Below, piece by piece: positions 12,046 to 51,192 of a stretch of 64,000 nucleotides of DNA. Below the pieces are notes generated by a model. It ran no database searches. It had not been told where the DNA came from and was given only the letters and a program-made list of their open reading frames with translations. The first letter of the stretch is position 1; each line of letters begins with the position of its first letter. Location of the stretch: NCBI GenBank assembly GCA_965649825.1, contig OZ287703.1:62001-126000 (forward strand), written 5' to 3'. Both the position numbers and the translations under genes were made by a program. This stretch comes from Penicillus capitatus (taxonomy: Eukaryota > Plantae > Chlorophyta).

Positions 12046-13608
12046 ATGGTGAGACACGGGCTTCTCTGCGTCGTGCTGTGTCTTCTGGTACACGGACCGA
12101 TTCCTTCGGTTGGCAGCCACGGTCTGCAGAGCATGAATCTCTGCAAATCTGACTCTTTTTCGTGCTTGGCCAGAGCGTCGTAGCTCAGAGGCCACGTTCA
12201 ACAGGGTCATTAAACACGAAGTCAAGGTGAGTTTCGCCGTCATTCCGCATACGGCGGCATACTATGACTGTCTTGTCTTGCAGAAGACAAGAGAATCACT
12301 GCATGGTAGAGAGTCTCCACTGTGCTCTATTCGACGGATCTGTCTCGTTCTGCAGACGACGGCGATATCGCTGCTTCGCGCGACTATGCCAGAACGAAAA
12401 CGGCGGTTCAGTTATCGGAATGCGGACGAAGATTGCTACAGTGCGTCGTCTCACAGTTTTTCATCGATGACGCAGCAAACTACAGGTCTGCAGACAACCA
12501 GTCGACGCCACTTCACCAGGCAGCGCGCGACGGACGAACTGAGGAAGTCAAGGTGAGCATTAGACAGACGCGTTCTCTTATGACTCAACCAGTCTTGTCT
12601 GTGAATGCAGGCACTCCTGGCGGCAGGGGCGACTGTCGACGCCGTAACCAACCTCGGATGGACACCGCTTCACGTTGCAGCCCGTTACGGACGTTCAGCT
12701 GTCGTCAACGTTAGCATTGGACCTTTTCTGTGCCCAGTAGATCGCTTGCCTCAAGGTTCTACTGGAGGCCGGAGCGAATGTCAATGCTGTAACCAACCAG
12801 AGATGGACACCGCTTCATATAGCATCGCTCAACGGACATTCATCGGTCGTCCGGGTTAACACTGGACGCATTCTCTGCACCTATTAAACTCGCCGCATAT
12901 AGGCTCTCCTGACGGCCGGGGCGACTGTCGACGCTGTGACCAACCTCGGATGGACACCGCTTCACCATGCAGCCAATAATGGTCGTCGAGAGGTCGTCCA
13001 GGTGAGCACCAAACGCCTTTTCTGTACCCACTAGATCCGTTACGTCTAGGTTCTTGTGTCGGCCGGGGCGACCGTCGACGCCGTGACCAACGTCGGATTG
13101 ACATCGCTTCACTATGCAGCTTTTAACGGACATTCATCGGTCGTCAGGGTCAGTCAGCATTAAACGCGTTTTCTGTGTCACTGTGCCGATCGCGTGTAGA
13201 TTTTAGTGAATGCCGGGGCGAATATTGCTGCCGTAAACGACGTTGGAATGACACCGCTCCACTATGCAGCGCTTTTCGGACGTTCGGCTGTCGCCAATGT
13301 TAGCATTAAACTCGTTTTCTGCGTCCACTGGACCAATTGTTTTTAGATTCTTGTGAATGCCGGGGCGAACGTTAACGCTGCTACATTTGACGGAAACACA
13401 CCGCTTCATCTGGCAGCGCTTTGGGGCAATTCACAAATCGTATCAGTGAGTAGTCTAAATCTCTTTTTAGGATCTCGTCGACGCTGGAGCATCAAAGACG
13501 ATTGCCAATCGTCGAGGAGAATTCCCTGTCGACGTGGTTTGCGATCATCCGGATGCCAATTGTTCCGATGCTACGCGATCCTTCCTCCTTGAGCTGTTGA
13601 CTCCTTGA
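12046..13608 (+). CDS. Secreted ankyrin-repeat protein 1 (12 exons; 7 one-repeat exons)
   Basis: Exons 12046-12121, 12174-12226, 12284-12305, 12356-12405, 12457-12552, 12611-12709, 12756-12854, 12903-13001, 13050-13148, 13200-13298, 13347-13445, 13471-13608, all GT-AG, giving one ORF. N-terminus MVRHGLLCVVLCLLVHG; repeats GxTPLHxAAxxG. Confidence 0.85.
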
Positions 13609-14443
13609 CTGACACGCCTTCTATGTCGCCATCGCCTAAATCTGCAGTAATATACCTCGGATTTTTGACGAGGTTTTTTTCACAGTCTGCATGTTACGTT
13701 GTCGAAAGTTTTATCCGGGCGTCGATTGATAAGTGTCGATGAACTCCATCCCCGTAGTTCTGCTGTAAGTGTGTCGGATTCTACAATCCTTCGATTTTGT
13801 CTTTTGTATTAACAGTAACACGCTGGCTTAAACGTCATGAGCATTTTCAACACATCCTCATTGTATGAGGAGACTCCGTGCATCTGCGCCTAAGGGAACA
13901 CACTGTGCTATTCACCAGTGTTCATCTTCAATCGTTTACGAAGGGCAGTTTTCGGAAAACACAGTCTTTCGGGTTGTTTGCATGTGGACGGACTAGAAAT
14001 GGATGAAGGGGGTTGTCGAATCTCACCGAGCGTCGCGCATCGCGACTTCTCTCTCTGCCTGCTCTTCCCGCAATGAGGCGTTCGACGCGCAATATATCGA
14101 CACGCGTGAAATGCTTCCTCTCCCTCTGTTTACTCCTCTCACAATCAACAAGGCTCAAACGCAGTAGTGACCAAATGATTTCTTAAATTCAGATAACAAC
14201 GAACGCTCTTCTGCGAGAAAGGAGGAGTCTGTTGTCGAACGGGCAGCCACACGACACTTTGCCGATGACTCTGTCGAAACGACTGAACAGTGCAATAGGT
14301 GGCAGATGAGAGGGTGTTGCCTCGACAGGGTATGCGCCTTGGCTTTCTTTCGCGCATATTCGATTTATTGAAGTCTTTTCAGAGACAGATGACAAAGTAA
14401 TGAACATGATATGTATGTATGGGAATCCACAATAGCGGATAGT

Positions 14444-16228
14444 TCAATCATCGTTTTGCAGTTCTTTGCAGAAGAGATCGATTTCTGAGAATATGAAATA
14501 CTCACGATACGGACGCAGACAGTAGTCAATTAAAACGAGACGGGCACGGCGAAAACATGGAAACGCATCTGCCAGATCCGACCAGTTCACGGAGTTCTCC
14601 ACTTGCGCCACTATTCGTTTGTAGTCTGTCTTGAACACCCAGTCGTGTGAGAAGAATTGGATCTTCTGGATCCTCGGCATACATCTCCCGAGCGATTCAA
14701 TCCGTGTCTTTGACATCTTCCAATGATGCGAAACTCCCAGCACCGTTAAATTGGAAAACGGTACGAGCTGGGCAAAGAAACGATCACCGGGGTCGCTGAA
14801 ATAGGAGAAGATGACGCTCAGTTCCTTTAAGCACGGCAAGGTTGCCAGTACTTGGAGAAGATCCGATTCCATGTCGATCGCCCACAGCTTCAATATCTTG
14901 AGTTCTGTCAGTTGCTGTAGGGCAGAGGACGCCAGCGTAAACTTCGAATGCGATTTGTAGACGTGGAGGGACGTCAGATGACGCATCGAGGACAGAGTGT
15001 CCGACAGGTCCATCGTCAAATTACCATAGCCAACGATCTTGAGATCGACCAGCTTCGTCAGGCAGCTCAAGGAGACTCCGACCATGGATGGCGTCAACGC
15101 GAGACGTGTTAACTGCACCATGCCTGTGATGGCTTCTATCATTTCTGATGTGACGTCCTCGCCCCGAACATGATCGAGGAGGAGTGCGCTGAGCTGGGTG
15201 AGGGAGAGCACGGAATCCATAAGGGGACGGGCGGCGGCTTTTTCATAGGCGATTTCCAGTTCGGTCAATCTAGTCATGTCCGAGAGGGTTGTGTAGAAAT
15301 CGTCGACCTCCAAATCAAGATGGCGCAGTTTAAACGTCTCCAGTCTCGAAAAGGCTCTCAGCAAAGGCCAGTCTTGAAACGGAGATTGGGCAGCGGCATG
15401 CTTTCGGAAATCCAGTGTACTCAACTGGGCAGCGTAAGGCAAGAACGTCTACACAACACACGAGATCCCACAAGAACTGGCATCAGAGTGGATCATCACT
15501 CGCAACTGCATGCTTCTTTCACTATTCTGACGCGTGTGAATCCAGTAGACTGTGAGCGCCGTGAGTCGGGTCAGTGAAGGGAAGAGGAGGCGATCGCCAA
15601 GAGTGACCAACAGATGAAAATCGCCGGTCAAGTTCAGCAGTCCGTGGAGCTCAGTGATCGGCTCCAGATGCGCTCGTATGATACGAGGCGCTCGGAGATC
15701 CAGCGAGGTAAGCTGCGTCAGGTATGGCAGGATGGCGATATATGCAGCGGAGTCGCTCCTGCGACTGAAACTGAACGAAAGGGACCGGAGAAGGCGCATC
15801 GACAACAGAGTGGAGAACAGCGTCTCCGCCGCCGGGCGCTCTCCCATGAAGCGTGTCTGCAACGTGCGCAGATTCTCAAGTCGTCGCAGCGAACGCATCG
15901 AATCCTCATCTAATGCATCTTTTCGGCGCCGCCATTCTCCGAGACGCAGAGCTGTTGCGTTTGGGAATCGCTCCGCCATCGCCTTCACCACTTTGGATGC
16001 GTCGAAAGCGATACCTGGTTGAATGGCGACGGGCAGTCGACGACAAGCGTCCCGCCAGCGGCGACAGACGAGGCGGCACTCGTGAAGGCCGTCCTCCATG
16101 ATGCATGCGAGCACCTTAAACAGGAGATGGTCCTGTTCGAGAAGTGCCCCCAGCGTCTTCTCACGCGCCGTGGCCGAGTCCGCTCCACTCACTAAGTTGT
16201 CGTCTGTATCCGCAGGAGTATCTGACAT
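14444..16228 (-). CDS. F-box-like/LRR protein C (intron 15449-15499)
   Basis: MEDGLHECRLVCRRWRDAC, LRRs, same phase-0 intron (..QLR|TFLPYAAQL..). Confidence 0.85.
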
Positions 16229-17140
16229 GCCACTGAACATGTCGCTGTGAGCATTCTGCGTTTTCGGCTGAGTGTGCGAACCTCATCGTTGAGTCGATAG
16301 GGTCTGCTGACGAATTCGAAACGGAAACGTGACGGACTGTCTGCAGAATCGCTGTCGATTCGATCCGTAGCTGCGAATTCATACTCCTGCTCTACGCGGC
16401 ACGTGTCGGATCTTCGCACTTGATGTGACTCGACACCTGAGTGATATCGCCGCCTTGTTTGCTGTCGATCTTCTTTCCGGGAGAATCAGAATTCGAGGCC
16501 TTTGAAGCACATTGCTGTCGAGACCGAGATGCGCTTTATGCATTTTCCTTCTGACGACGAATCGCATTCACAGATACGATACAGCTGGCAGGTTCGCCAT
16601 CCGTCCGTACCTTATGCTATGCTCCGTGACTTCGCGGAGTTCTGTGTCCATTTGGCAGGAGCGACAAATTCGCTAGACGTTTGCCTCATTTCCCGTCTCC
16701 TTTTCGCTTTTCTTTTCACGTGTGCTTCTTTCATTTCGCACAGTGACGGCAAAACGAAGGGGTGGATTTGTAGCGTCTGCAATTTTACTCAGGTTACGGT
16801 GAGATGTTCACACCCGCCGTGGATAAGCGAGTTAGATGCGACGAGTAGAAAAAACGAGATCAATTTGTCGACGGCCGATAGATCGAATAACGATTTTCGC
16901 GCATCACCGAAGTGCCCTGACTGGATCGTGCTAAATCTGTCAAGACATTGTTACTCATAAACATGTGTCGTCGTGTTCTGGACATTAAAATCAACAGCGG
17001 AATAGTAATGTTACTGCAGAGAAATGCGTTCATAATAATGTATGTACGATAAGATCTGCTACTCACAAACAGATGTCGTTCCATCGGCGTTAAGGCCGAC
17101 AGTGGATTGGTAGTGTTGGGAGAACAGCATCGAATGGTCA

Positions 17141-17246
17141 TGAATTCAGTCGCCTTAGAGAGTAGAATCAAATAGGTATCGTCCAGCAGCTCCTATAGGG
17201 CAGCTCGGACGTGCTTAATGACATCGACAGTATTGTCATTGGGTTT
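17141..17246 (+). repeat. ~105-bp repeat with an inverted copy at 20325-20428
   Basis: TGAATTCAGTCGCCTTAGAGAGTAGAATCAAATAGGT.. matches the reverse complement of 20325-20428 with scattered mismatches. Confidence 0.75.
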
Positions 17247-17354
17247 GTTGATCTTCTTATTCTGTGTCGCGTTCACCAGGAAAACCGAACTTGTGAACTC
17301 TTACGATCTGGAACGTACCGCTCAATGAGTCGCAATTCACGAAAAGGCAGCACC

Positions 17355-19098
17355 TTATGTAGAGACTTGAGACTCACTGGACTGCGAAAGTGAGCGAAGA
17401 CAAGGAAAGCTTTTCCACAGTCCCTTCCACAGTGCTCGGTGCGAATTGTCATAGACGCCATCATATGGAAGCTCTAATACCCTGAGCTTCGGCAAATACA
17501 GTTGCGGGAAATTGAAATCGCTCACAGAGTGTAAGGTTTCCTGAAAGGAGATCACCAGCTCCACCAGTTCTGTGAGATGACTCAATTCACAACAGGCGAT
17601 GTGCGGGTCCAGAGATGCTTTGCTATCAACAAGGGTAAGGGACGTCAGTTGAGTCAGCATACCAACGGCGTCCAGAAACCAGTGATTGTTAAGCACATGC
17701 TGTATCGATAGATGCTTCAATCTTCCAAGTTTTTCAGAAAACTGAGATGGCGTCACACGTTTATTCGGAAAGAGACGCAGACGCTTAGAAATTAGATCGA
17801 TCGACAGTGACGTCAGATTTGTCATGGTCACCAGTACTTCAACGAAGTCCATCGGAGGGCTCTCACAAAACCCGAATTGAAGAGACCGAATTCCCATTGG
17901 AAGGTGTTGACAACGATCGAGTCGATAATGGTTCAAGGAGAGCTGTGTGAGTTGCGTCAGGGTCATGAGGTGACGTACCTCGAGCTCAGATCGAATGCCC
18001 GATCGACGATTTCCAGAGAGAGTGAGCGATCTGAGTCCAGTGAGTGGGGACATGAACTCAGTGAGGGCCTTGAAGTCTCCTTCGTCTGTGACTTGCAATA
18101 CCAGGCTTGTCAGATGATGCATGTCCATTGATGCCTCGAGGAAGCTGCGCTCTCGTCGGTGTAAGAACATGACCGAAAGACTTGACAACCGCCAAAACCG
18201 GCGCCACAGATGCTCGTCTGTCGACGGCAGATCCCGTTTCTGATCGAGAAGTTCGAGATCAAGCGCCGTCAGTGTACTGGCATACGGAAGGATAGACTAA
18301 AACAGACACTTAGGGATATGCGATGCTTTATCGGAACTTGCATACCCGTAATCTGAAATAAGTACGTGACTCGTCATGTTCATCGATGTCACCGCTAAGC
18401 TTGAGGTGCCTCAGCCTCGGTGATGGGAACAACAGCTTTCCGCTGCTGTTGACGATCAGCGGAAGATATGCATTGAGATAACTGAGTCCTTGAAGCTCGG
18501 TAACGGGGTCCAGATCCGTTTGGATGAAACGGGTGATAGAGATAGTCAATGCCTCCAGATTCGTCAAAATACGCAGCGTATGCACGACGTTGTCCAAGAT
18601 GTCTTTTGTTTCTATCCGTACGTTGAAGGAACGTAGAGAGTCCGTCGTTGGCAACAACGCCGTCAGCCTCCTCACGTTCGCCTCGTCGTCGAAGGTGGAC
18701 AAACGCAGACTTCGCAGATTGCTCAGTCGCGTCAGGTTTTGCATCGCCTGTCTTCCCAGGATGTCATTGATATCGAACGACCTTTCCAAACTCAATGACA
18801 CGGCGTTCGGGAACAAGTCCATCACTCTGTTCAGCTTGTCCAGGGACGAACCCCCCAGGTGGACCGGCAGCTTCCCGCAGGCGTCTCGCCAAAGACGACA
18901 GACGCGTCGGCATTCGTGTAGTCCGTCGTCCATGACGTAAGAAAGAACCTTGACAAACAAGTCCTCGTGGTTCTCCAGGAGAGCGCTCAACGTCTTCTCC
19001 GAGCCGGACTCTCGAGCGACAGCGTCTTCCGCATCGGACTCGTGTGACTGGCGACTGCTTGTGCGTCGGCGACATTTCCTCCGATGTACGGTCTCCAT
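17355..19098 (-). CDS. F-box-like/LRR protein D (intron 18297-18345)
   Basis: MDDGLHECRRVCRLWRDAC, LRRs, same phase-0 intron (..RLR|SILPYASTL..). Confidence 0.85.
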
Positions 19099-20324
19099 TG
19101 GAGGAAAGAGAGCTGCGTCGATGGACGCGAAGCTTAACGCGACAAGCGAAAACAAGTCGGCCGTTACTGTTTCCGTCGATGTTACCTGTGTGAACTTCAG
19201 GCGCAGTTCGTGGATCATGTGGATCAGTCTAGCCTCATCGTACTACGCTATTATTGCCTCATTTTTCTATTGCACTCCGCTGCCCGAACACTGAACCTAA
19301 ACGCAAAGCTGGTTTTGGAGACCTACTCATCTGACTTCCTCTCCTTCTAAGGCTGTGCCTGTTTGAGAGAATGCCTCTGGTCGAATCAAATGCAATCGTC
19401 GTACTGTTAGGACCGATAGGGTCGGCGATTGGTCCGAGCGCGTCGAGGCTGCGATGCGAGGAGAGTCGGACGGGTATTCTTTACAGGTGCTCAGTACGTC
19501 GTTATATAGGCAAACGTCCTGTCATTCGACAGTGACGTTCCATGCTCTAACAGTACTCCCAGCCGTTTTCCTTTTACTGAAATGAGACCTCCTAATGAGC
19601 TACTGTCAACATCGTCGGCAGAAACAGATGAGAAGACATACGACACGCAAAAGAGCAGTGACGGCTTGACGTCGAAGTTTCAGACCACTTGTTGGACTTT
19701 ACGAATCAAGGGACGACAGACAAAGCTGTTCGTGGGTTTAGTCGACAGCAGTACGTGAAGGGCGTCGCACGCGACGGTGTAGGTTTGCGGAGATGCTATC
19801 GCCATCACCAACGCTGGACGACAGACATAGTTTTTTGATTGCTTTTAAACCTGGACGAATGGACTGAAGCCACAATCGTGTCCTTCCACTCCGCCTTGTG
19901 TCACCGCAGATGCTTGTGATGATAAACTTCCGAAAAGCTCTGTCTATCCGAAAACGTCGCGTAGATAATAATAAGAAAACCAGAACTCGGTCGGATGACA
20001 GACGCTTGTCCTTAACACGAGTCGCATTTCGCAAGTGGACGTGAAGAGATCCATTTTTCACCGTGTGGTCACTGTTAGTGCGAACATCGCCAAGCATCAA
20101 AGACTCTATTAAACAAGAACGCGAGTGAGATATATCTTCCTTGGTACAGCGCAACCCAACGCCTTTCTAGTACATCAAGAAACGCATGAGTATGCAGCAC
20201 GACTGAGCAGACATTCAAAACCAAAGAATCTGAGGCGCAGCGTGGATCGACATGAGAAGTGCCTCCTCATCAACCAGTTCTCTATACGAGCAGTCCTCCG
20301 TTAGACAAGAGATACATGCAGTGG

Positions 20325-21836: not shown

Positions 21837-24005
21837 TCAGATCTTTAACAGGTCAATAAGGCTGGCGCGAGTATCATCGGTACACTCCATGATCGCATAC
21901 TCGCAGACGACGTCGACAGGCAAATCTCCATTATCCGCGGCGATGGACTTTGATGCCCCAGCGTTGACGAGAACCTGAAAAGAGATTCAGGTGCCAAAAC
22001 GAAACTTGACAACTCACTGTCGCGGCTTCCAGTTTTCCGGCCATCGATGCTACATGAAGCGGCGTATATCCTTTGTCGCTTAGAGCGTCGACAGTCGCCC
22101 CGGCTGCCAAAAGAGCCTAGAAGCGAGAGATCTAGTGGATGCAGAAAACGCGTCTAATGTTCGCCTGGACGGTTTTCTGAGATCCGGAACCGGCTGCAAC
22201 GTGAAGCGGTGTCCCTCCTTCGTCACTTACAGCGTCGATATTCGCCCCGGCTGCCAGAAGAGCCTAGAAGCGAGAGATCTAGTGGACGCAGAAAACGCTT
22301 CCAATGCTCACCTGAACGACATCTGTGTGTCCTCCTGTGGCGGCATAATGAAGTGGTGTATATCTAAATTTGTCTACGACGTCGACACTTGCTCCGGCCG
22401 ACAAGAGAACCTAGATGCGATGGAGCTTATAGACGCACTATGGCGTTCAATGCTCACCCGGACGACCTCTACGTGTCCATTTTCGGCGGCATAGTGAAGC
22501 GGTGTGTATTTTCTGTAGCCTCCTACGACGTCGACACTTGCTCCGGCCGACAAGAGAACCTAGACGCGATGGAGCTAATAGACGCATTATGGCGTCCAAT
22601 GCTCACTTGAACGGCCTCTGTGTGTCCCCCTTCGGCGGCATAATGAAGTGGTGTTTGTTCCCATTTGTCTACGGCGTCGACACTTGCTCCGGCCGACAAG
22701 AGAACCTGGACTCAATTGAGCCAGTGGACGCACAATAGAGTTCAGTGCTCACCTGGGAGATCTCTGCGCGTCCTTCTCTGGCGGCATAGTAAAGAAGTGA
22801 GAATCCGAAGTCGTCTACGACGTCGACACTTGCTCCGGCCGACACGAGAGCCTAGACGCGGTGGAGCCAGTGGACGTACAATGGCGTTTCGTGCTCACCT
22901 GAACGATCTCCAGATGTCCGCGACGGGCTGCATGGTAAATCGGTGTTTGTTCAAAGATGTCTTCGACGTCGACACTCGCCCCGTCCACCAAGAGAGCCTA
23001 GACGCGGTGGAGCCAGTGGAAGCAGAAAACGCGTCCAATGCTCACCTGAACGACATCTGTGTGTCCTCTTTCGGCGGCATAATGAAGTGGTGTATATCCC
23101 AATTTGTCTACGACGTCGACACTTGCTCCGGCCGACACGAGAGCCTAGACGCGGTGGAGCCAGTGGACGCAGAAACCGCGTCCAATGCTCACCTGAACGG
23201 CCTCTGTGTGTCCCCCTTCGGCGGCATAATGAAGTGGTGTATATCTAAATTTGTCTACGACGTCGACACTTGCTCCGGCCGACACGAGAGCCTAGACGCG
23301 GTGGAGCCAGTGGACGCAGAAACCGCGTCCAATGCTCACCTGAACGACATCTGTGTGTCCTCCTTCGGCGGCATAGTGAATAGCTGTTTTTCCGTCCATG
23401 GTAGTAGCATGGACACTCGCACCACTTCCCAGGAGATCCTGCGTACGCAGACAATACTGGTTGAGTAATAGCAGAACGTGTCCGTCTAGTGCTGACTTTG
23501 ACTTTCTGAATTTGTCCGTCGCGTGCTGCCTCGTGAAGTGGTGGCAGGTCATTGGCTGTAGGGTTCTTGACGTTTTCTTCGTCATCAATAAGAACCTGCC
23601 ATGGGATACGAGTGTCAAAACAGCGTTCGTAGTTCAACAACCGTACCGCAGTATTCGCTTTTGCAGAGTCGCAGGAGACAGCGAATCCGCCGTTCTCGGC
23701 GGAACGAGACAGTTCTGCCGCACTGGGAACAGTGGAGCGTCCACCATGCAGCGAGTCTTCCGCCTTCTAGGGCACAAGGCAGTCACAGCTCGTCGCCGCA
23801 TTCGGCATGACGAGCGAAGCTCACCGTGATTCCGCGCTCGACGAGCGCGTTGGACGTGGCCTCTGGGCTACCACTCTCTGGCAAAGCACGACAAAGAGTC
23901 AGCTGCGAAGAAATCCATGCTTGGCCGACCGTGACTGCCGACCGACGGATGCGGTCCGTAGATCAACAGACACAACGAAACGCAAAGAAGACCGCGTTTC
24001 GTCAT
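21837..24005 (-). CDS. Secreted ankyrin-repeat protein 2 (11 one-repeat exons plus 138-nt cap exon)
   Basis: Signal exon 24005-23930 ([17 protein letters not shown]). Repeat exons 23595-23497, 23438-23340, 23291-23193, 23144-23046, 22997-22899, 22851-22753, 22705-22607, 22559-22458 (102 nt), 22410-22312, 22263-22165, 22116-22018; cap 21974-21837. One GC donor and one altered acceptor. Confidence 0.8.
22117..23339 (-). repeat. Tandem ~147-bp exon+intron units
   Basis: 99-nt exon plus 47-48-nt intron repeated; adjacent units near-identical including introns. Confidence 0.9.
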
Positions 24006-25225
24006 TTTCCGAGTGCGACACACAAGCAAACATAGAAGAGTCGAGTGCTGGCTGCAGTCGAAACGTGAAATGGACGCATGGACGGTGCGACTGGCCTTTT
24101 ATGCATGCGCATCGTACCCAGATGGACCCACAGACAGCGAGGAGCCATTACGTAACTGCATCGTAAGACATGTCTGTGCCACACGATGCGTCTTCGCCTG
24201 CCAGCCACCTGTCATCTGCATCCTCTGCTGTGCTGTGCTGTGTTAGGGTTCTTGCCCTGATAGACTGCAATGATGATAACACGTCCATGCGCGCACGATT
24301 CAAGTTTTGAAGTCAACCCGATTCATCTGATAAGCATTCTTGACTTCGTAAGTAACACAAGACACTGGAGGTCAGTCAATTTCTCACTCAGTAAGCGAGG
24401 CGACGCATTACGGTAATGAGAGATTCCGATGTCCCATGTCCGTCAAGCGCAGATCAGACAAGAGATATAAAGAGTCCCTTACACAGACTAAACGATGTTG
24501 CAAAGGGAAGAGTGTTTCTGCTCACAAAACTGACTCCTCTGTTTTCCATGCACTAGATTCTGGGCCATTTCAAAACAACACAGCGCCAAATGCCTGCCAT
24601 CGTTAAAATTCTCGGCATTGATGCGGTGAGCAGAAACTCGCATCCGCTCAAAATTCCACGCAATTTATGAACCGTTGAAATGCCGCAAGGATTAGAAAAG
24701 CTCAAAGTGGAAAAGGTGTTTAGAATCAGCACAATTCTGTTCTGAAGGCAGCAGGATGATTAGCAGGAAGCAGATTCGCAGGAAGGAATCAAACGCGCGG
24801 TTACTTGCAGTTGCGAAGAGCACGATCATAACACTGCATTCATCGCCGTGTGATACCTCCCTTTTATAAAGAGTGAGAAGTATGTCAAGTGGTCAGTAAA
24901 GGAATGGGCGTAACTGATATCATACCGACGTCATATCACACTAGGCGGCGTATCGTCATGTCACGGAACTCGCTGCGCAATTCTGTCTACCTTCGCCCCT
25001 TATCCTCATCATTCGTTCTCGCATCGAATTGCCGAAACCTCCCGTTCCGAAACACCAAACGACGCGTATCGTAACCATCGATACACTTCTTCTTTGAGAC
25101 ACGCACTATCTTGATGACAGATTGGTCCGTGGGACAGACATGAGGGCACGATCGCTTGATTGTCATTGTTTCAGTTCTTTGTGGCTTTATTTTTCGAGTC
25201 CGTTGTTTAGGAAGGAGGATATTTA

Positions 25226-33390: not shown

Positions 33391-35010
33391 ATGGCGTGGT
33401 CGATTCGTTCCATCTCGTTTGCCAACACTGGCCGATGCGTCGCCTGTCGCGCCAATTCAGCACTCAAGATCGATAGCACCTCTGTCAAAGCCACATCCGA
33501 CGCCATAACAGGTCGCACTGAGAGGATAACGATCTGTGTGTCGCGAACCTGTCTTTGGCAGAACCGCTCTTGGTCCGAGCTGCTCGGGGTGAGCTTGTCG
33601 AACGTGCGCCGTGCTGGTATGTGATACCGTTTGACGATCGATCGATCTCTCTGCTGAGTGTAGGATGATGCGACAGGCAGGTCGCTATCAAAAAGTGTGA
33701 CATCTATGACACTCTCTCACTCTTTTCGAGGTGACCGATTAGGCTTATCGAGATGTGGCTTTGAAATATCCGTCTTTTCGGCAACGCTCCGAAACGACTG
33801 AGCTCATTGTCGAGATTACCCTTCAGCCATGGAAAGCTTTTAAACCAGACGGCGTCATTCTTTTCAGGTCTGGTCATATTCACACCATTCTCACTCTTCT
33901 TAAATCTTACTCTTTTAGCGATATCCTAACGATTCTTCCAGCCGTGGGAATCCCCTTTGAGATCGACGATCTACAAGGTCCCATCATCGAAGAGCCTGTC
34001 TGTTCCCCCGAACACGTATCGCTCTCTCTATCTTTATCACATCTCATGCTTCTTCTAGCTCAAGAGACTGACGCCATTGGATGTCGATGCGTTGCGTTTT
34101 ATCGGCGAGAGTCTCCGTACGATACGTCAAGAGCTCAAAGGCGAAGCTGCGTTACTCGGCTTTGTGGGTGAGCATTTCCCTCCTCGTTCACCTGTTCGCT
34201 TGATTAGGCGATGGTGTAAGATGTGTGAAAGGATCGCCTTGGACCATTGCCACCTATCTGATCGAAGGCAGAAGCTCATCGTTCTATAAGACGATCAAAA
34301 CGATGACCGGACGCGATCCTGCCACACTCGACCGCTTGCTTTCCTTCCTGGCCCAACAAATCGCACAATATGTTATCTACCAAGTAGGGGCAGATAGCAA
34401 CAGACGTCTGGAGACGACGACTTTGACGGTTAGATAGAAAACGGCGCACAGGTTGTTCAGATATTCGACTCGTGGGGTGGTCAATTGCCACCGAAGACGT
34501 GGGAGCGTTGGTCGAAGCCATACATCGAAACCATCATTCAAAACGTCAAAGACGTCTATCCCAATGTCCCTCTCACTCTTTACGCCAACGGTACGTCTCA
34601 CTCTTTCATTCCTTCTAACCAAGACGGCGCACCAGGCGGCGCTGGATTACTGGAGAGACTGAAAGAGACAAAGGCGAATGTTGTTGGATTGGACTGGGCG
34701 GTCGATATGAAGGACGCCCGAGAGCGACTCGGATACGATACGGCCGTTCAAGGAAACGTCGATCCCTGTGTCCTCTTCAGCGATCGCAAGGCGATCCGAG
34801 ATGCCGTCGACGATTGCATTCGATCCGCTGGACCCAAAGTGCCAATCGTATCTGACTCATCCCCACATCCGAGGTGTGGTGTGGCGACCTTAGGGACACG
34901 TTCTGAATTTGGGCCATGGAGTGATGGTCGGTACACCGGAAGAGAATGTCTCTTACATGTTTGACTTATCCAAAGAGTTTCTCTACAAAGATATCTTCGC
35001 CACAAACTGA
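33391..35010 (+). CDS. HEME: Plastid uroporphyrinogen decarboxylase, multi-exon
   Basis: Transit peptide, then [72 protein letters not shown]. Confidence 0.95.
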
Positions 35011-37986: not shown

Positions 37987-39225
37987 ATGAGCTACGAGGC
38001 ATCACCTACCTTTGACTATCGTCGACGCCTTTCGTCGGTTTCCGACGCCCTTCGTTTCTGCATGAGCCTCCGGCAAAACACACCCACTGTCGGGTAGGCG
38101 CCACGACGCATGCGTTCAGCCATGCGCCCCACGTTCAGCAATCCCCGAGGCCAACGACGTTTTTTCGTTGTCTGTAGTCGACGCACTTCCCGTGACCGTG
38201 ATGACCTCCTCCCTGTCGGTCTCTCCTCTTCGATCGATCTCGCGTTCCTCGACGAAATGGATCCAAACATCGGTCCGTCGTGCATCTTCGTTTCCGTTGC
38301 TATACTGTTGCTCAGCGTCGTCTGCAGTGGACGGCCTGCGTTTGATATACGAACGCGAAATACCACTTGAGCTCCGGACCTATGACGGAACGAATTTTCC
38401 AGCCGAAGTGCCGAAACCGTACCGTTTGCCTCTCGGACGTAACGCCGTCTGCAGGTCGGCAACGTCGAGCAACTCAAAATCAAAGTGCTGATTCTCGGCG
38501 ATGAAACCCAACCCGACGCCCTGCGAGTCCGCCAAGCCCCCTCGCGCACTTATCCTCTCTTTAACGCGTACGTTTGTTCGTCAGGTCGAGATCACGAGCG
38601 AAAACAACCTCTTCTTCCATTTTCTACACGACATGAGTTTCGAAGAATTCGGCGACGTTCAAGTAAGACCGGCCGCCGCATTGGATAGCCGATAGCGCAA
38701 CGTGTCGTTTCTCAGGAGGCGCAGCGTTTGATGATCGAATTCGCTGAGTATCCTAAGCTCTTGGTGCGTCTGATCAACGCCTGTGTTAAGGAGCCGCAGC
38801 ATTGTATTGGTCTTCTCTATTTCAACGGAGACAAAACGGCGCGTCTCGATTTCGTCCAGGTCGTCGTCATCGACGCATCTCTCAACCGTCGAGGCGATGA
38901 TCAGACGCCTGTCGTGCAGAACATGCAGCACAAGTTTGTGGAATTGCTTCAAGTGCGTTTCGCTGAGTCGAATGAAGAGGTGGTCCGTCGTCAGATCACC
39001 TATCGTTACAACAACGTCAAATCCAAATCGGAAATCTTGTCCGCAAAACTCGCAGATTTTAACGCCATGGTATATCACACGCACGAATGCCTTGCCAAAA
39101 TCGGATGAACGGACGGGATCTGTGTCTAGATCAAAGTCAAGAATCCGAGTCTGCTGCTTCAGATGCAATCCAGAAATATCGACAGTTCAGCGGCCTCTCC
39201 GACAAAGAAGACGTTTCGGCCTTGA
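37987..39225 (+). CDS. SAS6L: SAS-6-like protein (SAS6L-type, short SAS-6 head paralog), multi-exon
   Basis: IYEREIPLELR, VEITSENNLFFHFLH, QRLMIEFAEYPKLLVRLINAC.KEP, ARLDFVQ|NMQHKFVELL, RQITYRYN, KNPSLLLQ; no long coiled coil. Confidence 0.7.
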
Positions 39226-40101: not shown

Positions 40102-40397
40102 GGTAGCGATAATGACATCGATCGAACGCGTTTCGAAGATGACGTTCGGCATGCGCCGGATGCCCAACGCTTACCGACGCCATCAAAGTACGATCACCGT
40201 CTGTATCGATTGTCTACTGAACGCTTCGCTCCGATTCGCATCGCGATCGACGATCGGCATCACGCGTGACGCGAGCATGATAGAGACAGGTCCCTCAACT
40301 GTCTGTCGTGCGATGTCCGTACTCGGCATCGTTCGATTTTCCCTCACTTTTCTCATCGCCGCGTTCCGTACCCATCGTCCGCCCGGTTTGTCACACC

Positions 40398-42014
40398 ATG
40401 TCCGATAACGAGGACTTCTCAGACGAGGCATTCGGATACCTGCTTTTACAAGAGCCGTTTCTGACGAAGATTCTGATTCATCTCGTCGACGGCGGACTGC
40501 ACGAATGCCGCCGTGTATGCTCCACCTGGTACAGGGTCTGCAACCTGCTGCCCGTGCAGCTTCGACTCAACTGGAATGCCGACATCGCTTCCGTACCTGA
40601 AAAATTTCCAAATCTCCTTTCTCTGGCCACCAAAGAGACGCACGTTTTGCGACGATTCTTCGTGGAAGAACAGATTCTTCCTTGTCTATCTCGATTACGT
40701 CACATCACACATCTTGGATTGGCATGGCTGACCGAGTGGCCTTCGTTGGAGAAGATAGGAACCCGTCTGCGATTTCTACAGTCCATACGATCGCTTTCCG
40801 TCACCTTTCGCAACGCACACAGCTTTTTGGACTTCTTGGCAACGCTGAGTCATTTGACTCGATTGGTCACGCTAACGATGTCGGGCGCATCCGATGCTCA
40901 CGTTCCGATGGATGCCATGATGAAACTGCCAAGTCTCAGATCGCTGAGCGCAGCGCCGCCTTTTCTCTTCAATACGAATCGAGAGATGCTGTTCGGCAGC
41001 TTACGACAGTTGACGAAATTCGAGCTCCTTTCGGAATACCCCCGTGGTCTGCTCGGCCACTTCAGGCTCGAGGTAAGGAACCCTTCTTTATCGTCATTCT
41101 GATGATGTGACGGATGGTGACGATAGGACGTCCAGCTGGATGCCGCACATCTCCGATCGTTATCGATCAATGGCGTCAACCATCGAAAACTAGAAATCGT
41201 CAATTGGAACACACTGCGATCCTTTACGCAGCTGGAGCGGCTGGTTCTCAGGAGAATCGCCGTGGCGTCCGAAATCTTCGCCAATGCCCTGAAAGATCTG
41301 CATCAGCTGACAGAGGTAGCCATCGTGGACGTCTCTTTCTCGAGCACTGCTCCCGTCTTCGATGCCATCTTCGCCATCGCGCACCTCAAGGCACTAGCAT
41401 TCGATCAAGGATCTTCCGACACGGCGTTTTGCCTTAAGAAATCCGAACGGGACATGACGCAGCTGACGAAACTCAGTTGGCGATATCCCGTCTTCTTCTC
41501 CTGGATGTGGTCGTTGCCTCAGATGGTCCACCTCGATATCACCGCCGTGCATTCGAGGCAGCCCAAACTGCTGTTATGGATGCTGGAGGGTATGCCGCAT
41601 TTGCGATCGCTGAGAATCGAGAACACGGGTCCGGCGTTTCTCCTGCCGAGCGGCATCTTTCTCCAGAGAGAGAAACTAAAGTCCATCGAACTGAGGCGCG
41701 TGCAGATCGATCTGAATCTATTTGAGTACTTGGCTGGGTTGCATGAGCTGACGGAGCTTCGACTGCAATGCCACGAGAGTACCAAGGCGTCATCGTTCAT
41801 CCACTTGTATGCAGATGTCAATCGACTGACACAACTGACGGCGCTGGAAATCGTTGTCAACCATTCCTCACCAGCCCTCCTGCTGCAGCACCTCTCTGGA
41901 GATCGGCTGAAGTCCATTCGGGAATTGACGTTGCCCGGGTGTCGGCTGAACGATGATCAGCGGATGGACCTCTTCAACAGATTTCCATGTCTCTGTCGAT
42001 TTTGCTACTTCTAG
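40398..42014 (+). CDS. F-box-like/LRR protein E (intron 41073-41126)
   Basis: VDGGLHECRRVCSTWYRVC, LRRs, phase-0 intron at the homologous position. Confidence 0.85.
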
Positions 42015-44813: not shown

Positions 44814-45583
44814 GAGAACTGTAAATGTAGGACTCTAAATCGAAACTTACTGGTGAAACAAAGTTAGGGAGTGCGAAGGACTAACTGCTCAAATGTTCTC
44901 ACACGAGTGCATTGCTTGTGGAAAATATGAAATGAACACAACCCTCTGCACTTTTAAACGTCGCAGATGCCAAGGCACCTCGAGAACTAAGAAACGTCCA
45001 GGGATCGACAGGCAAGTCCTGCCAACTAAGATTCAAACTAAAAGAATCGAGAAACCCCTCAAGAACCTCTTCAAGATGGTCAGGTTGAACAACGATCGCG
45101 CCTTAAGCTGGCTGGTCACTGAAGGCTACGCCACGAGACGCTTCCAATCAACACAATCGCTGTCAAGTCATCGACTCCAAATAGGGCCAAAGAACATCGA
45201 TCTGCCGTCTGTACCCGGACCAGCGTCTCCTTCGCCTGGAAGCCTCATTTTGGTTGGTAACATGGTCGAGAGAAAAGAAAAGAGAGAATCTCTCAGGACA
45301 GGCGTCCACGCATTCGCCGCTTCTCCTTGCTCAATCGCCCCGGTCTGAATCCATCCAACGTCGAAATTGAATTCCTTTCATTTCAGACATTGATCATTTC
45401 GCAGTTTGTCTTTGTATCTTCCGGAGACAGCGGCGACCGTCTAACAGGTCCTTCACACGATGAGCGCAGACAGAGAGCGACCCACGGGGACGACCGGTAA
45501 CGCAACAGGTCACAGTCTTCGACCATTCCGCCTCAACGTCTGGTTTCGTTTCGGATGTAGCGTCGCGGATAGCGGATGCGCCG

Positions 45584-47199
45584 ATGGCGGAAAGGTGTCT
45601 AGGAGACTGGCTCGAGAACGACGACTACCTGTCCAAAGTCCTCCGCTATCTCGTAGACGACGGACTGCACGAGTGCTCGCGCGTCTGCCGAAGATGGCGT
45701 GAACTGAGCTTCGGCGTCTGTCCCAAGCTCGCCCGTGTTCCGTCGAGCAGAATGACTGAGATGCTGTCGAAGTATCCAAACACGGTTTCGATGGCTGTGA
45801 ACGTAGAGGATACGAATGAAGACATCAACCGTTACCTCGACGCCGTGAAACGTTTTCCAAAGATCGAGCACTTGTTCTGGCAGGGCTTTTCCCGAATGTC
45901 CAGCTACCGCAGCCTGCTTGAATCGATTGCAGTCGCTTTCAGACTGGCTGTCATCTTCGAACTCTTACGTACAAACCTGGATGGGGCCGGCCCTCAGACA
46001 TCTCACAAACCTGACGTATCTCCGATTGAAAGCACCTGAAGTAGTCTTTCTCGAGCCGGTCACAGAAATCCACAAGATTGAAAAGCTGTGCCTCAGTTCG
46101 ACTCTCTTGGTGGACCACAAAGGCGATCTTGTTTTCCCGGCTCTGACGAGTCTGACGTGTCTGGAGCTGATACGTGAAAAATCTCTTCCCTCACCCAAGC
46201 AGTACGAAGACAGGATGAGCGGCAGACTGCTGGAAGTAAACCTCTATTCTTAATGCTGATCTCCTCGAGGACATCTGTGTCCTGCGTGTGCTTCAGATTC
46301 TGCGTCCCTACGCCTCCACCCTCGAGTCCCTGGCTGAACTCAATAGCCACAGCCGTATGCTCTTTCCGACGAGAGACTGGTTGGGACTGGAAGGTTTTAG
46401 AAAGCTTGAAACACTTCACATCGGACATCTAGCGCCAGGCAACTCTATTGAGCACTTGGAGACAGCTCTGAGAAACACGGGCACAGTCACAGAGCTCTGT
46501 GTGAGATACATAAAGCCGCCACCCGACATCGTTGCCGATGCGCTGTTCGGATTAGATCAGCTGTGATCCCTGACGCTCACTCTTCGAATCGTCGATCAGT
46601 TCAGCCATGCATTGAGCACACTGGCGAGCTTGACGAATATTACAGAACTCGTTGTTTACGTCAAACAGGTGGACACATCAATTGGTGAATTCACAGGACT
46701 CGTCCGTCCGGGGATCTTATCGGAACAATGCACCACGGATTTTGCTCATGCACTAACCAAGCTCCATCTGCTGGAAGAGCTGGATTTGCTAGTCATCGAT
46801 GACATGTTGTTATCTGGTCACATGTTTTCCTGTATGGCAAGACTGAAGAGGCTCTTCATCACTTTGCCCAGTCTGCAGATGGAAGATGACTTCTTTCCTG
46901 TTCTAGGATCTCTGGAGAAACTAACTTCTCTGGAGCTGGACTCTAGGGTCGACACTGAATGGGACACTTGTCAGCACATGTCCAAGATCACACTTCTAAG
47001 TAATCTGAGGGAACTGATTCTTCGTCATGGCACCGACGGGAGCCGTCAACGAGCGAACCTCCTCCGTAACTTCGATCAAAACAGCTTCCCTAAACTGCGA
47101 ACGCTGCACATTTCGAGCTTAAATTATCTGGATGAGGCTTACTGCAAACCACAAACAAAGTTTCCGCGCTTAAACAGTGTTTTCTTTCACGCTTATTGA
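45584..47199 (+). pseudogene. F-box-like/LRR pseudogene F (paralog of B)
   Basis: DDGLHECSRVCRRWR. Frame switch near 45900-45920, family intron 46236-46296, in-frame TGA at 46564-46566 where B has ..QLKSL... Confidence 0.8.
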
Positions 47200-48965
47200 T
47201 ACGACTGTGAACTCATCTGTCCTCTCTATCGTTTAGAGTTCTCGTCGCGTCAAGGATTTACAACAAACAGTCTTTTCTGTTCCTAAACAATGAGTGGATG
47301 TGACTCCATTCCTGTGCGAGGCGAGACGTCGATGGTTGTCCGCCACGACGAACGACGCCGCCATTCGCATCACGATCCGAACAAACTTCACGGACAAGGG
47401 AAACCGTCGTCGCTGAGGCGCCGCTATGTTCTGCAACACATCCTCTCTGGGTCATGATGGATGTGTGGTCGTACGCATATGAAGCTTTCTGCGGCGTCCC
47501 AATGTGCTCGATCATGCAGTTAGAGACGACGGACAGTATCGATGTCGAAGCAACGGCCTAGACACTAACGCGATTCGGTGTCGGTGAAAGCAGACCACAG
47601 AAAATCGAAGGTCGAGGGCAGTGAGCAAGACCGAGTTTGCCAGTAGCAGCTTGTGCTCCATTCCGTTTGCATAGTCAGCCATCTCTCCCGGCACCCTTTT
47701 TAAGCAGCGGTACACGTGCTCCTGTTTCGAATAGTCGTGGATCGCCGCATCGATCACGTGTTCTGTGCGAGGCGTTCGAGTCCAGAGAGGACGAAGTCCT
47801 TTTCATTCAGTTATGCGTTGAACGAAATTCCGAGCTCAGGTGGATGCGAAAATGGTAAACGTAGAGAGAGGAAGGGTCTGTTCTTTGGTTTGTACTTGTA
47901 CGCTGTCTTTCCTTTACGATCATCTTCCTTGCCTTTCATCACTTCTCGAATCCTCTCTTCGTCTCACCTTCGTTGCCGTCTTGGGCACTTCGCTAGGCGA
48001 TTTCTCCTGTCATGTCGAATGTATGTCTGAGGGTCGTTGCTTGCAGGTATCCTCGTGCTGTGCAGCTTTGGTACACTCCCGGCGGTCCTCGATGCAGGAG
48101 AAGACTCGTTGGCTAGAGCAGCCTATCTACCCTCCCTGTTCTCCGTCGTCCGGGCACTCTATTAGCTCTTTCACCCCTTCACTGGATGCTGTTCGATCCA
48201 AGTCGTGCTGAGAAGAACAGTCGTCAACTGTGCGAGCAATCACCTACACATTTGCGACGCCCTTGCAGAAATGGTTGTCTAGTCAAGCCACAGAAGGTCC
48301 GTCTTCTTAGCTCCACAGACCAGCACTGGAAATTAAGAATGTGGATAACGACACCGATTTCCATCTGTGTCGATTCGACAGAAAGAAGCAAAACTGCGAT
48401 GTCCTCTGGAGCTGCACAGCAGTGCAGGCAGAACCGAGTGTGACATTGGTGTCGTGTAGCCAAGAACCCGTTGCCTGCTTCGTGACAAGTCAACTCCCTC
48501 TCACGCCGGAATACTCCATCTGTTGCGCTTCTCGATGACAAGCAGAGAGGTGCAAGAGTAGTGCCCATGTGAAGAACGCAAGAGACGTTACTGGATGAGC
48601 ATGCAGGGATCTTGGACAGACTCCTGTAGCAGGACACGTCATCTCAACTCTGGCAGTGATGCTATTCGGTATGCTTCGTGCGTATGTGCAGGTTTCCATC
48701 CCTTTAGACTTCTATTCCAACGCCCCTGCTACAGCACAGCCAGCAACCAAAGCAGACAGATGATGTGGACAGGTAAAGACAGAGTGTGTGTGGCACAGGT
48801 AGACCTTACGATGTCCTTACGTAATGACCCTTCCATGTCTTTGTGTCCATCTGGCCACGAAGCGCATGCATAAAGGCCGATCTTCCGTCGACCATTCGTC
48901 CATTTCGCGTTTAACTCCGGCCAGCACACGACAGTTCTGTCGTCCGGTTGCGCGGCACTTGGAAG

Positions 48966-51192
48966 ATGACAACCAACGGGCTTCTCAGTGCCTTGTTCTG
49001 CTTCTTGGTCTTCGGACCTCATCCGTCCGTTGGCAGTCACGGTCCGCAGAGCATGAATGTCTTCGAAGCTGACTCTTACTCTTGCTCTGTCAGAACCCGG
49101 CGCTACAGCGCATTCCTTGTCCAGCGTATTTGTCCAGCGCGAAGTCGCGGTAAGCTTCCATCGTTGTCATTTTGTGTGCGTCGACATTCTGCGCGTGTCC
49201 TGTGCTGCAGAAGGCCGGAGAATCGCTTCATGGTAGAGCCTCCGGTGTGCTCAGTGTGGCACAACTGTCTCGTTTTTCAGAAGACGGCGAATTCGTTGCT
49301 CGTCGCGACTACGCCAAATCGAACACTGCGGTACGGGTATTGCATGCAGCACGAATGTTGTGGTGGGAAGCGTTTCGTTTCGCAGGCTCTCATCGTTGAC
49401 GAAGCGAACGTCAACAAACCTTCGGCCAATGACTGGCCTCCGCTTCATCAGGCAACGCTCGACAGAGACTTGCAGAAAGTCGAGGTAAAGAGAGAGCGCA
49501 TTTTGCTGTCACTAGACCAGTCCTGTAGGCTCTCTTGAAAGGTGGATCCGATGTCGACGGCGGCGACGGCGGCGAGATCGGACTCACTGCGCTACACATC
49601 GCAGCGGGATTCGGATACACAGAGATTATCGAGGTAAACACTTGAAGCGTTCTCGCAGTAAATTTATTCTCGAGTTTGTGGCTCCAGGCCCTCTTAGCTC
49701 ACAACGCGGACATGAATATCGTAGACAACGACAAATGCACGCCTGTGATGTACGCAGCGCGTTATGGTTTCACAGAGAGCGTCGAGGTAAACGCTCGAAG
49801 AATTTTCGCATTCACTCACTCTTCCTTGTCGCATCTCTTTAGGTTCTCCTAACGCACGGGGCGAATCCCGACGAGGTCGAGAGATACGGATACACTGCGT
49901 TAAACTACGCAGCACAAGAAGGACATACAGAGACTGTTAAGGTAAACACTTAAAGCGTTCTCGCATTTACCTTTTTTGAAATTGCGTCTTCAGGCTTTGG
50001 TAGCTCACAACGCTGACGTGAATATCGCCAACGAGAAAGATTGGACACCTGTGATGTACGCAGCGCGTTATGGTTTCACAGAGATCGCCAACGTAGACAT
50101 TCGAAGAATTTTCGCATTCACTCACTCTTCCTTGTCGCATCTCTTTAGGTTCTCCTAACGCACGGGGCGAATCCCGACGCCTAAGATACGACGGGTTCAC
50201 GTCTCTGATGTACGCAGCGTCTTATGGTTTCACAGAGATCGCCAAGGTAGACATTCGAAGCGTTCTCGCGTCTACCCACCTTTTTCTGGTCGCGTCTCTT
50301 CAGGCTCTCATGACTCACAAGGCGGACGTAAATATCGCAAGTGACGACGGATGCACCGCTCTCATGTACGCAATAAGGAAAAGATGTACAGAGATTGTCG
50401 AGGTAAACACTCGAAGCGTTCTCGTATTTACCCTTTTTCGAATTTGCGTCTTCAGGCTCTGGTAGCTCACAAGGCGGATGTGAATATTGCAGACAACGAC
50501 GGATATACTCCTCTTCTGCGTGCACTGTATCTCGGGTACACAGAAATTATCGAGGTGAGCACTCGAACTGTTCTCGCATTTGTTATTTACCAGCCGTGTA
50601 TCCCTTTAGACTCTCATAGAGCACGGAGCGGATGTAAACCTTGCAAATAACGACGGAACAACGCCTCTTATGCGTACAATCTCGGCCAGGTACACAGAAA
50701 TTGCCAAGGTGAGCTCTCGGAGTGTTCTCGCACTTGCCATTTTCCAGTCTCGATTCTTCAGCTTCTCCTGAGAAAAGGGGCGAATCCTAACGCCGTAGAC
50801 AGATCCTCGTACACGCCTCTCTTAAGGGCAGCGCGTAATGGACGCACAGAGATCGTCAGGGTGAACACTCGAAGTGTTATCGCAGTTCCGTTGTTCCGAT
50901 ATCATGTCTTCAGGCACTCGTGGAAAAAGGGGCAGATGTCGACGCCACCAACACAGCCGGATTGGCGGCGCTTCACTTTGCAGCGAGGAATGGATATGTG
51001 CAAATCGTTGAAGTGCGTTTTTGCTGTTGTTTCACTACCTGAGTCTCTTTCCAGATTCTTGTTGATGCTGGAGCATCGAAGTCCCTCAAGACGAACTACG
51101 GACTGAAACCGGTAGACTTCGTTTGTACTTATTCTGGCGTCATTTGTTCTGAGACGATTAAATCCGTCCTCATCAAGTTGTTGACTCCTTGA
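48966..51192 (+). CDS. Secreted ankyrin-repeat protein 3 (11 one-repeat exons, one frameshifted; 138-nt cap)
   Basis: Signal exon 48966-49041 (MTTNGLLSALFCFLVFG); micro-exons 49094-49149, 49211-49232, 49281-49330. Repeat exons from 49386-49484 to 50914-51012; exon 50149-50246 is 98 nt with TAA; cap 51055-51192. Confidence 0.75.

Follow-up and report, generated by a model that had tools for sequence, protein, structure and literature searches.

Ankyrin-repeat genes with one-repeat exons, a predicted signal peptide and a cysteine-bearing cap: a probable family of secreted or luminal binding proteins in a green alga

The window analysed here, that is, the whole stretch of 64,000 nucleotides (nt) to whose positions all coordinates refer, contains three paralogous ankyrin-repeat (ANK) loci, designated A (12046-13608, forward strand), B (24005-21837, reverse strand) and C (48966-51192, forward strand). 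The window has a GC content of ~0.52 and introns of ~45-60 nt. In the ENA metagenome assembly ERZ25074695 the same sequence is contig ctg339784_20x_l, and further members of the family lie on other contigs of that assembly (labelled L002, L003, L004, L005/L006, L007 and L010). Among these are paralogs D (L004) and E (L007), an allele of C termed C' (L002) and a B-like copy termed B' (L003). The exon tables of A, B and C confirm the coordinates and the common scaffold first proposed from the sequence-only reading of the window. The scaffold opens with a signal-peptide-like exon of 76 nt and three small exons (53/56, 22 and 50 nt), continues with a series of ankyrin exons encoding one repeat each (7 in A, 11 in B and 11 in C), and ends in a 138-nt cysteine (Cys) cap. 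The individual features are as follows.

11900-12045, forward: upstream block of locus A, with the TATA-like sequence GCGCATGCACAAAAG at 11941-11955, ~95 nt ahead of the ATG; A, B and C are ~80% identical here.
12046-12121, forward: exon 1 of locus A, 76 nt, ending in phase 1, signal-peptide-like MVRHGLLCVVLCLLVHGPIPSVG/SH (here and below the slash stands at the predicted cleavage site); pN/pS 0.35-0.40 vs B and C.
12174-12405, forward: exons 2-4 of locus A, linker and N-cap (12174-12226, 12284-12305 and 12356-12405; 53, 22 and 50 nt); GT..AG boundaries and frame conserved in A, C, C', D and E.
12457-13445, forward: ANK array of locus A, 7 one-repeat exons (96 + 6x99 nt) with introns of 46-58 nt.
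13446-13470, forward: last intron of locus A, 25 nt, shortened by an internal deletion when compared with B, C, D and E.
13471-13608, forward: cap exon of locus A, 138 nt, DLVDAGASKTIANRRGEFPVDVVC-x6-CSDATRSFLLELLTP and stop.
23930-24005, reverse: exon 1 of locus B, 76 nt, ending /SH, with an upstream ATG, not in frame, 28 nt ahead of the exon.
23647-23877, reverse: exons 2-4 of locus B (53, 22 and (50) nt), with a 48-nt "intron 3" at 23744-23697 that lacks an AG acceptor; the same change is present in B' (L003).
22018-23595, reverse: ANK array of locus B, 11 one-repeat exons (10x99 nt and one of 102 nt).
21837-21974, reverse: cap exon of locus B, 138 nt, with the Cys pair spaced x6.
48966-49330, forward: exons 1-4 of locus C (48966-49041, 49094-49149, 49211-49232 and 49281-49330; 76, 56, 22 and 50 nt), MTTNGLLSALFCFLVFGPHPSVG/SH and N-cap.
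49386-51012, forward: ANK array of locus C, 11 one-repeat exons (99, 105 and 8x99 nt, and one of 98 nt).
49843-50148, forward: 306-nt segment of locus C (exon 8 through intron 9), missing from L002, a two-repeat difference.
50149-50246, forward: exon 10 of locus C, 98 nt, with a 1-nt deletion (GCC-TAAGA vs GCCGTAAGA in L002).
51055-51192, forward: cap exon of locus C, 138 nt, ILVDAGASKSLKTNYGLKPVDFVC-x6-CSETIKSVLIKLLTP and stop.

Locus A has 12 exons in total, and loci B and C have 16 each. All ANK exons of the three loci are in phase 0-0 and encode one 33-residue repeat each. It had been claimed that almost all of them measure 99 nt, which holds with the exceptions of 96 nt (A), 102 nt (B) and 105 and 98 nt (C); the claim does not extend to the last of these, exon 10 of C, which is frameshifted and carries a TAA. 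The repeats match the ankyrin profile (PF00023/PF12796; TPLH..A...G......LL..GA), and their ankyrin identity is far beyond chance, since Pfam applied to the B model returned Ank_2 with E = 2.8e-125 and Ank with E = 5.5e-98 over 10 stretches; only ANK families were found in this model, with no signalling domain. The consensus positions L2, A7, T18, P19, L20, A23 and G27 are near-invariant, and a period of 147 nt, corresponding to an exon plus an intron, was detected in A and B by Tandem Repeats Finder. The cap cysteines, previously described as VC-x7-C, are actually separated by six residues (VC-DHPDAN-C). Elsewhere in the window no fragments of the family were found beyond A, B and C, Rfam and tRNA scans of the window gave no matches, and codon-usage scoring of its open reading frames (ORFs) discriminated genes poorly.

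Analysis of exon 1 points to a conserved secretory signal. Nonsynonymous differences per site (pN) among A, B and C amount to 0.18-0.24 and synonymous differences per site (pS) to 0.52-0.61, and the resulting pN/pS of 0.32-0.40 indicates that exon 1 evolves as coding sequence under purifying selection. Residues 18-25 (GPxPSVGSH) are nearly invariant among the three loci, and the frame into exon 2 is kept, the length of that exon differing by 3 nt between copies (53 vs 56 nt). When the sequence was read directly, no alternative in-frame ATG was present ahead of the ANK array. The predicted signal begins with a short n-region, charged in most copies, and continues with an apolar h-region of 11-13 residues, the mean Kyte-Doolittle hydropathy of which is 2.5-3.3 in an 11-residue window. 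This is followed by a helix-breaking GP and then by a conserved -3/-1 site, SVG/SHE, at residue 23. Exon 1 was also found in C', B' and E; the GP..SVG/SHE motif is common to A, B, C, C' and B', and E has the variant GPHPSVG/IH. Judged by manual criteria only (an h-region of 7-15 apolar residues and small residues at -3/-1), the family N-terminus has the properties of a cleavable endoplasmic reticulum (ER) signal peptide. Its layout appears to be that of a classical cleaved signal, too short for a membrane span. Plastid import does not depend on a signal peptide in green algae with primary plastids, so that a signal peptide here means the ER route. Secretory targeting is well supported in silico, and from it we infer actual secretion. 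The signal-peptide-like N-terminus noted earlier is thus conserved within the family and selectively maintained.

A TATA-like box is located ~95 nt upstream in all copies, with the variant TATAAAG in paralog D, where a triple tandem 22-nt unit containing TATAAAG (L004, 9590-9660) takes the place of the single box of the others. Between paralogs, the proportion of differing sites (p-distance) is ~0.21 for introns and ~150 nt of upstream sequence (blocks 11900-12045, 24006-24150 and 48830-48965) vs a pS of ~0.4-0.7 in exon 1 and cap. That non-coding sequence is less diverged than synonymous sites suggests either gene conversion or a constraint acting on the promoter and on introns as short as these.

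The relationships among the repeats bear on how the arrays expanded. Each repeat is most similar to another repeat of the same locus, with B7, B8 and B13 being 93-94% identical compared with ~70-75% between loci, indicating that the expansions were local and partly recent. Exons 7, 8, 11 and 13 of B are 87-94% identical to each other, and their flanking introns up to 100%. Conservation of the introns that separate the repeats equals or exceeds that of the exons. Those after B6 and B7 are identical, those after C7 and C9 are 95% identical vs 83% for the exons, and the pooled intron p-distance of 0.22-0.27 compares with a pS of 0.39-0.60. The pooled pN/pS between repeats is 0.67-0.78. Within the 33-residue unit, variability is greatest at exon positions 26, 15, 25, 17 and 14; all five belong to the six positions that are randomised in designed ankyrin repeat proteins (DARPins; Mann-Whitney p = 8e-4). 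Such a distribution fits a putative binder with a changing contact surface; the same pattern is general to ANK proteins, and adaptive diversification is therefore not proven by the variable positions.

Comparison with a second copy of the region captured a change in repeat number directly. Contig L002 is syntenic with window 39235-59856 and 97-98% identical to it over 20 kb, with 30x coverage vs 20x for the window contig, and it represents a second haplotype or strain. In addition, a third contig (10x coverage) has regions 88-92% identical to the window, so that more than two haplotypes or closely related strains of the alga are present in the sample. The L002 allele, C', possesses 9 ANK exons vs 11 in the window, the 306-nt segment 49843-50148 being missing. 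Its counterpart of exon 10 is intact at 99 nt, and its spliced ORF is open for 412 residues. The endpoints of the 306-nt difference fall in sequence common to exons 8/10 and introns 7/9, the introns being 95% identical, which is as expected from unequal homologous recombination. Across paralogs the number of repeats is 6 in D, 7 in A, 7 in E, 11 in B and 11 in C, so that variation in repeat number is found both among paralogs and between the C alleles (11 vs 9), a comparison that the sequence-only reading had named as a test. Its proposal of diversification by exon duplication is likewise borne out by the 147-nt tandem units, by the within-locus duplicates and by an allelic pair that differs by two units. 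Diversification by unequal recombination, with gain and loss of exon-plus-intron units, is well supported in silico.

As for the remaining copies, paralog D has 6 ANK exons and a cap, together with a +2-nt change in exon 1, and paralog E is fully intact, with exons of 76/53/22/50/99/6x99/cap (7 repeats) and all junctions intact. In the B' copy (L003, 10500-10980), exon 4 is followed directly by unrelated sequence, ~450 nt from the end of the contig; the interruption is either a possible transposon insertion or an assembly break. The family would accordingly comprise at least five paralogs plus alleles in one assembly. A profile of the N-terminus and cap gave three real matches only, all ORF fragments on other ERZ25074695 contigs, and a profile built on a mini-protein (signal peptide, N-cap, one ANK repeat and cap) retrieved only generic ANK proteins, many of them bacterial.

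The cap, by comparison, could be traced further. A profile built from the three window cap exons yielded 112 matches in an exhaustive HMMER search of 1.84 billion representative proteins, and 24 clusters among them have the full C-terminal module, GASK-x6-G-x2-P-x-D-[VI][VI]-C-x(3-8)-C..R..L..LL.P at the protein end. The 24 clusters are mutually no more than 50% identical; both cysteines are conserved, with a spacing of 6 in 19 of them. All three window caps carry the GASK and C-x6-C elements that define the capped ANK module, in the form GASK-x6-G-x2-P-x-D-[VI][VI]-C-x6-C-[ST]...R..L..LL.P. Many of the matches are short ORFs that display an ANK exon, a read-through intron of ~45 nt and a cap exon, the same gene structure as in the window, and one-repeat exons with an intron directly before the cap are found in the window loci, D, E, L005 and L008. 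The only named carriers of the cap belong to Bryopsidales (Ostreobium and Caulerpa). Two Ostreobium quekettii proteins, CAD7698948.1 and CAD7700645.1, have clear signal peptides and several modules of N-cap, three ANK repeats and Cys cap, with Pro-rich linkers between the modules in CAD7698948.1. Caulerpa lentillifera g7620.t1 (EukProt, P0353) has an MLKL_N-like N-terminus (E = 3e-5, below the Pfam cutoff) followed by ANK repeats and the cap, and no signal peptide. An MLKL_N-like four-helix bundle joined to ANK repeats constitutes a cell-death-type architecture in a siphonous alga.

Other cap carriers consist of a trypsin-like S1 protease fused to an ANK array and the cap. Genomic protease-ANK-cap genes, with one repeat per exon, are located on L005/L006 (ctg337790_14x_l) and L010 (ctg340523_41x_l), and on L008/L009 of assembly ERZ26696514, the latter with ~25 ANK exons; they occur in several copies per contig and in two different assemblies. 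A reverse transcriptase/integrase ORF related to the Ty3/gypsy element of the window adjoins the trypsin-ANK gene in L010. The fused proteases keep the His-loop and Ser-loop disulfide cysteines, which are typical of S1 proteases of the secretory pathway. Together with the Ostreobium signal peptides, the protease fusions provide independent support for a capped ANK module in the secretory pathway of this lineage. The trypsin-ANK architecture has no description in the searched literature. These relatives share with the window family the cap motif GASK..G..P.D.[VI]C-x3-7-C..L..LL and, in the genomic members, the one-repeat exons; they differ in their N-terminal parts, which are multi-module with Pro-rich linkers and a CC motif (Ostreobium), a trypsin domain, or an MLKL_N-like domain (Caulerpa).

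The affinity of the window itself was established from a conserved neighbouring gene. The spliced model of the uroporphyrinogen decarboxylase gene, UROD (33520-34990, forward strand), a plastid-type gene with eight introns of 43-64 nt, has its best matches in Bryopsis sp. (66%) and Caulerpa lentillifera (68%), followed by Micractinium, Coccomyxa and Haematococcus at ~63-64%. These matches support the green-algal origin suggested earlier and identify the host as a chlorophyte nearest to Bryopsidales, without a close relative among sequenced genomes. An oomycete affinity, considered on account of the short introns and an INR/FPR-like upstream motif, was ruled out by the all-green-algal UROD matches and the Bryopsidales relatives of the cap.

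On this evidence, it is fairly probable that A, B and C belong to a family of secreted or luminal ANK binders that evolves by unequal recombination among exon-intron units. The family would be specific to the lineage of a Bryopsidales-like siphonous green alga and would consist of soluble ankyrin-repeat binding proteins that enter the secretory pathway by means of a cleavable signal peptide at the N-terminus. In the predicted mature protein, an N-cap precedes 6-11 ANK repeats, and a conserved cap with a C-x6-C pair closes the C-terminus. Each repeat would correspond to a symmetric phase-0 exon of 99 nt and a short intron of ~48-57 nt, an arrangement that lets unequal homologous recombination insert or delete whole repeats and leave the frame intact. 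Substitutions would gather mainly at canonical ligand-contact positions, and the family would undergo birth-and-death turnover, with C frameshifted, the last intron of A doubtful and the N-cap junction of B altered in the window. As to ligand and role, the likeliest function would be extracellular or vacuolar recognition, or that of an adaptor, in a biotic interaction or wound response, possibly alongside the related secreted trypsin-ANK-cap proteases. An immune or self/non-self function, exon skipping and a disulfide that would stabilise the cap in the manner of LRRNT/LRRCT caps are speculative. Also tentative, and in our view rather doubtful, is the broader proposal of an extracellular ANK recognition repertoire in Bryopsidales, made up of signal-peptide ANK-cap proteins and trypsin-ANK-cap proteases, in which one-repeat exons would be reshuffled to give population-level binding diversity for surveying pathogens, symbionts or wounds in giant cells, as an ANK counterpart of LRR systems.

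A number of observations weigh against the secreted or luminal binder family and are considered here together with the explanations that compete with it. The N-terminus could remain uncleaved, as a signal anchor or other membrane tether, or the mature mRNA could lack exon 1, so that the ANK array would form a cytosolic scaffold. ANK proteins are mostly cytosolic, the neighbouring F-box and LRR family genes are of intracellular types, and the donor of exon 1 is weak (GTCNGC). The Caulerpa protein g7620.t1, which bears the same Cys pair without a signal peptide and has an apparently cytosolic N-terminus, demonstrates that the cap is not exclusive to extracellular proteins, so that the disulfide is to be taken as putative. 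The profile of N-terminus and cap found no homologue of the spliced N-terminus in any annotated proteome or transcriptome, and no homologue of it was detectable outside its own assembly. A non-secreted product is nevertheless unlikely, in that an h-region of just 11-13 residues, followed by GP and a small-residue -3/-1 site, is what cleaved signals typically have, purifying selection acts on exon 1, its frame joins exon 2 in all copies despite lengths of 53 vs 56 nt, and there is no other in-frame start. The donor GTCTGG, moreover, is a genuine one in UROD. The homology-defined introns of this conserved gene use GTCTGG, GTGCCA and GTAGGG among their donors, compared with the non-consensus GTCNGC, GTTAGC and GCGAAC of the family, so that weak donors and short introns are normal for this genome and no obstacle to the family models. 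A different fate for a secreted product is that of an effector rather than a receptor, released by the alga to act on or in the cells of an epiphyte, endophyte or grazer, or of an animal that hosts an endolithic or symbiotic alga. The combination of signal peptide and ANK repeats is the same as in described effector families, evolution is rapid, with copies gained and lost amid many repeats and transposable elements, ANK folds are known best from reducing cytosol, and the named relative Ostreobium inhabits coral skeletons. No host-translocation motif is recognisable, and the conserved Cys pair, the protease fusions and the Pro-rich linkers suit proteins that stay extracellular, which makes an effector role improbable.

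The condition of several copies raises the further explanation that those in the window are decaying pseudogenes of a repeat-rich family, subject to neutral duplication and decay only. The 1-nt deletion in exon 10 of C (50149-50246) causes a frameshift with an in-frame TAA, and the window allele would be open only with exon 10 skipped. The last intron of A measures 25 nt vs 42-64 nt for all other family and UROD introns, and it may fail to be spliced out. In intron 3 of B the acceptor CAG has become CCG, leaving no canonical AG; the 48-nt segment is in frame and stop-free, so that its retention would add 16 residues. In C, D and E, too, this segment has 48 nt and reads through in frame with no stop, and a codon-position periodicity test did not discriminate coding from non-coding. 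The +2-nt change in exon 1 of D and the interruption of B' add to the damaged copies. At least one of the three window copies, C, is a damaged allele, and not all three appear functional. The window and L002 alleles of C differ by 9 nonsynonymous and 3 synonymous changes, which is about neutral (allelic pN/pS ~1), and the recent duplicates in B have a pooled pN/pS of 1.46, with values of 1.4-2.9 on very few substitutions. The changes are too few to support a claim of positive selection among these B repeats. Neutral decay alone remains quite unlikely, given that C' and E are fully open with all junctions intact, that exon 1 has a pN/pS of 0.32-0.40 and the structural ANK positions are strictly conserved, that the frame is kept over 12-16 exons in A and B, and that 24 clusters sharing no more than 50% identity have kept the cap.

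ANK repeats are a classic intracellular binding scaffold. To regard secreted eukaryotic ANK proteins as essentially unknown would be too strong, for secreted ANK effector families are described from the oomycete Phytophthora sojae (PMC11139960) and from the plasmodiophorids Plasmodiophora and Spongospora (PMC12503489). Like the present family, these effectors have a signal peptide followed by an ANK array, form expanded and polymorphic families, and vary at non-structural positions. They differ in that they belong to pathogens and are thought to act in the host cytosol, whereas the present family appears in a photosynthetic green alga; neither a Cys cap nor a one-repeat-per-exon architecture is reported for them. 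The mini-protein and N-terminus + cap profile searches showed no relatedness to them beyond the generic ANK repeat. Shuffling of repeats carried on single exons has been described in candidate receptors of the ROCO-LRR and NB-ARC-TPR types in the brown alga Ectocarpus (PMC3341825, PMC11378527). These share with the present family one repeat per exon, symmetric phases and repeat-level duplication or shuffling proposed as a diversifier, but they are intracellular and combine a ROC-COR or NB-ARC domain with LRR or TPR, in contrast with ANK repeats, a signal peptide and no signalling domain here. The present family is thus a mechanistic analogue only, and not a member of that group. Fungal NOD-like receptors (NLRs) have highly internally conserved ANK, TPR or WD repeats with repeat-number polymorphism and hypervariable positions (PMC4986451). 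The likeness lies in near-identical tandem repeats, unequal recombination and variation focused on binding positions; the differences are an intracellular location, NACHT or NB-ARC domains and repeats not separated by introns. The family combines elements of secreted effectors, brown-algal receptors and fungal NLRs and belongs to none of them. The resemblance to DARPins, which are composed of an N-cap, n consensus-like 33-residue repeats and a C-cap, extends to the most variable positions 14, 15, 17, 25 and 26, which are those randomised in DARPins. DARPins are synthetic, Cys-free and produced in the cytosol, unlike the natural family with its signal peptide and conserved Cys pair in the cap. 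Exons of 99 nt that encode one 33-residue repeat each also occur in vertebrate ANK1/2/3, which differ in being cytoskeletal adaptors with no signal peptide, a fixed array of 24 repeats and long introns.

The searched literature, including that on Ostreobium, Caulerpa, Bryopsis and siphonous algae, holds no description of such a family, in agreement with the earlier suggestion that it was undescribed. The secreted eukaryotic ANK families on record are those of pathogens, and the present one would come from a photosynthetic, coenocytic green-algal lineage. It would provide a natural test of ANK arrays working outside the cytosol, and a candidate molecular basis of defence or wound biology in giant single-celled algae, a field in which almost nothing is known. 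It would also be a second, independent algal case of diversification by one repeat per exon, and its predicted disulfide-capped scaffolds are of possible interest to protein engineers.

The other genes of the window comprise a PPR gene, a kinase, SAS-6, PLAC8, a Ty3/gypsy element and six F-box + LRR genes. The six copies of the F-box-like + LRR family (4410-9210; 14444-19218, reverse strand; 40308-42014; 45464-47196) have the common motif DGLHECRRVCRRWRDAC, and further copies occur on L002, L003, L004 and L007. On every contig examined, members of this family adjoin a signal-peptide ANK-cap gene, indicating that two fast-evolving families are co-clustered. One of the F-box-LRR copies has a possible N-myristoylation/palmitoylation start, MGC, from a reading of its sequence. 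At 13-3527 there is an apparently intact Ty3/gypsy coding region, with gag-aspartyl protease, reverse transcriptase, RNase H and integrase in two long ORFs. Two tandem copies of a 30-nt unit, 93% identical, occupy 31286-31346 within an ORF whose product contains a repeated GDxPNREPVG peptide. A PLAC8-family gene is located at 10703-11194 on the forward strand. The SAS-6 N-terminal domain is encoded at 38689-39105, also on the forward strand, and its presence implies that the alga has centrioles or basal bodies.

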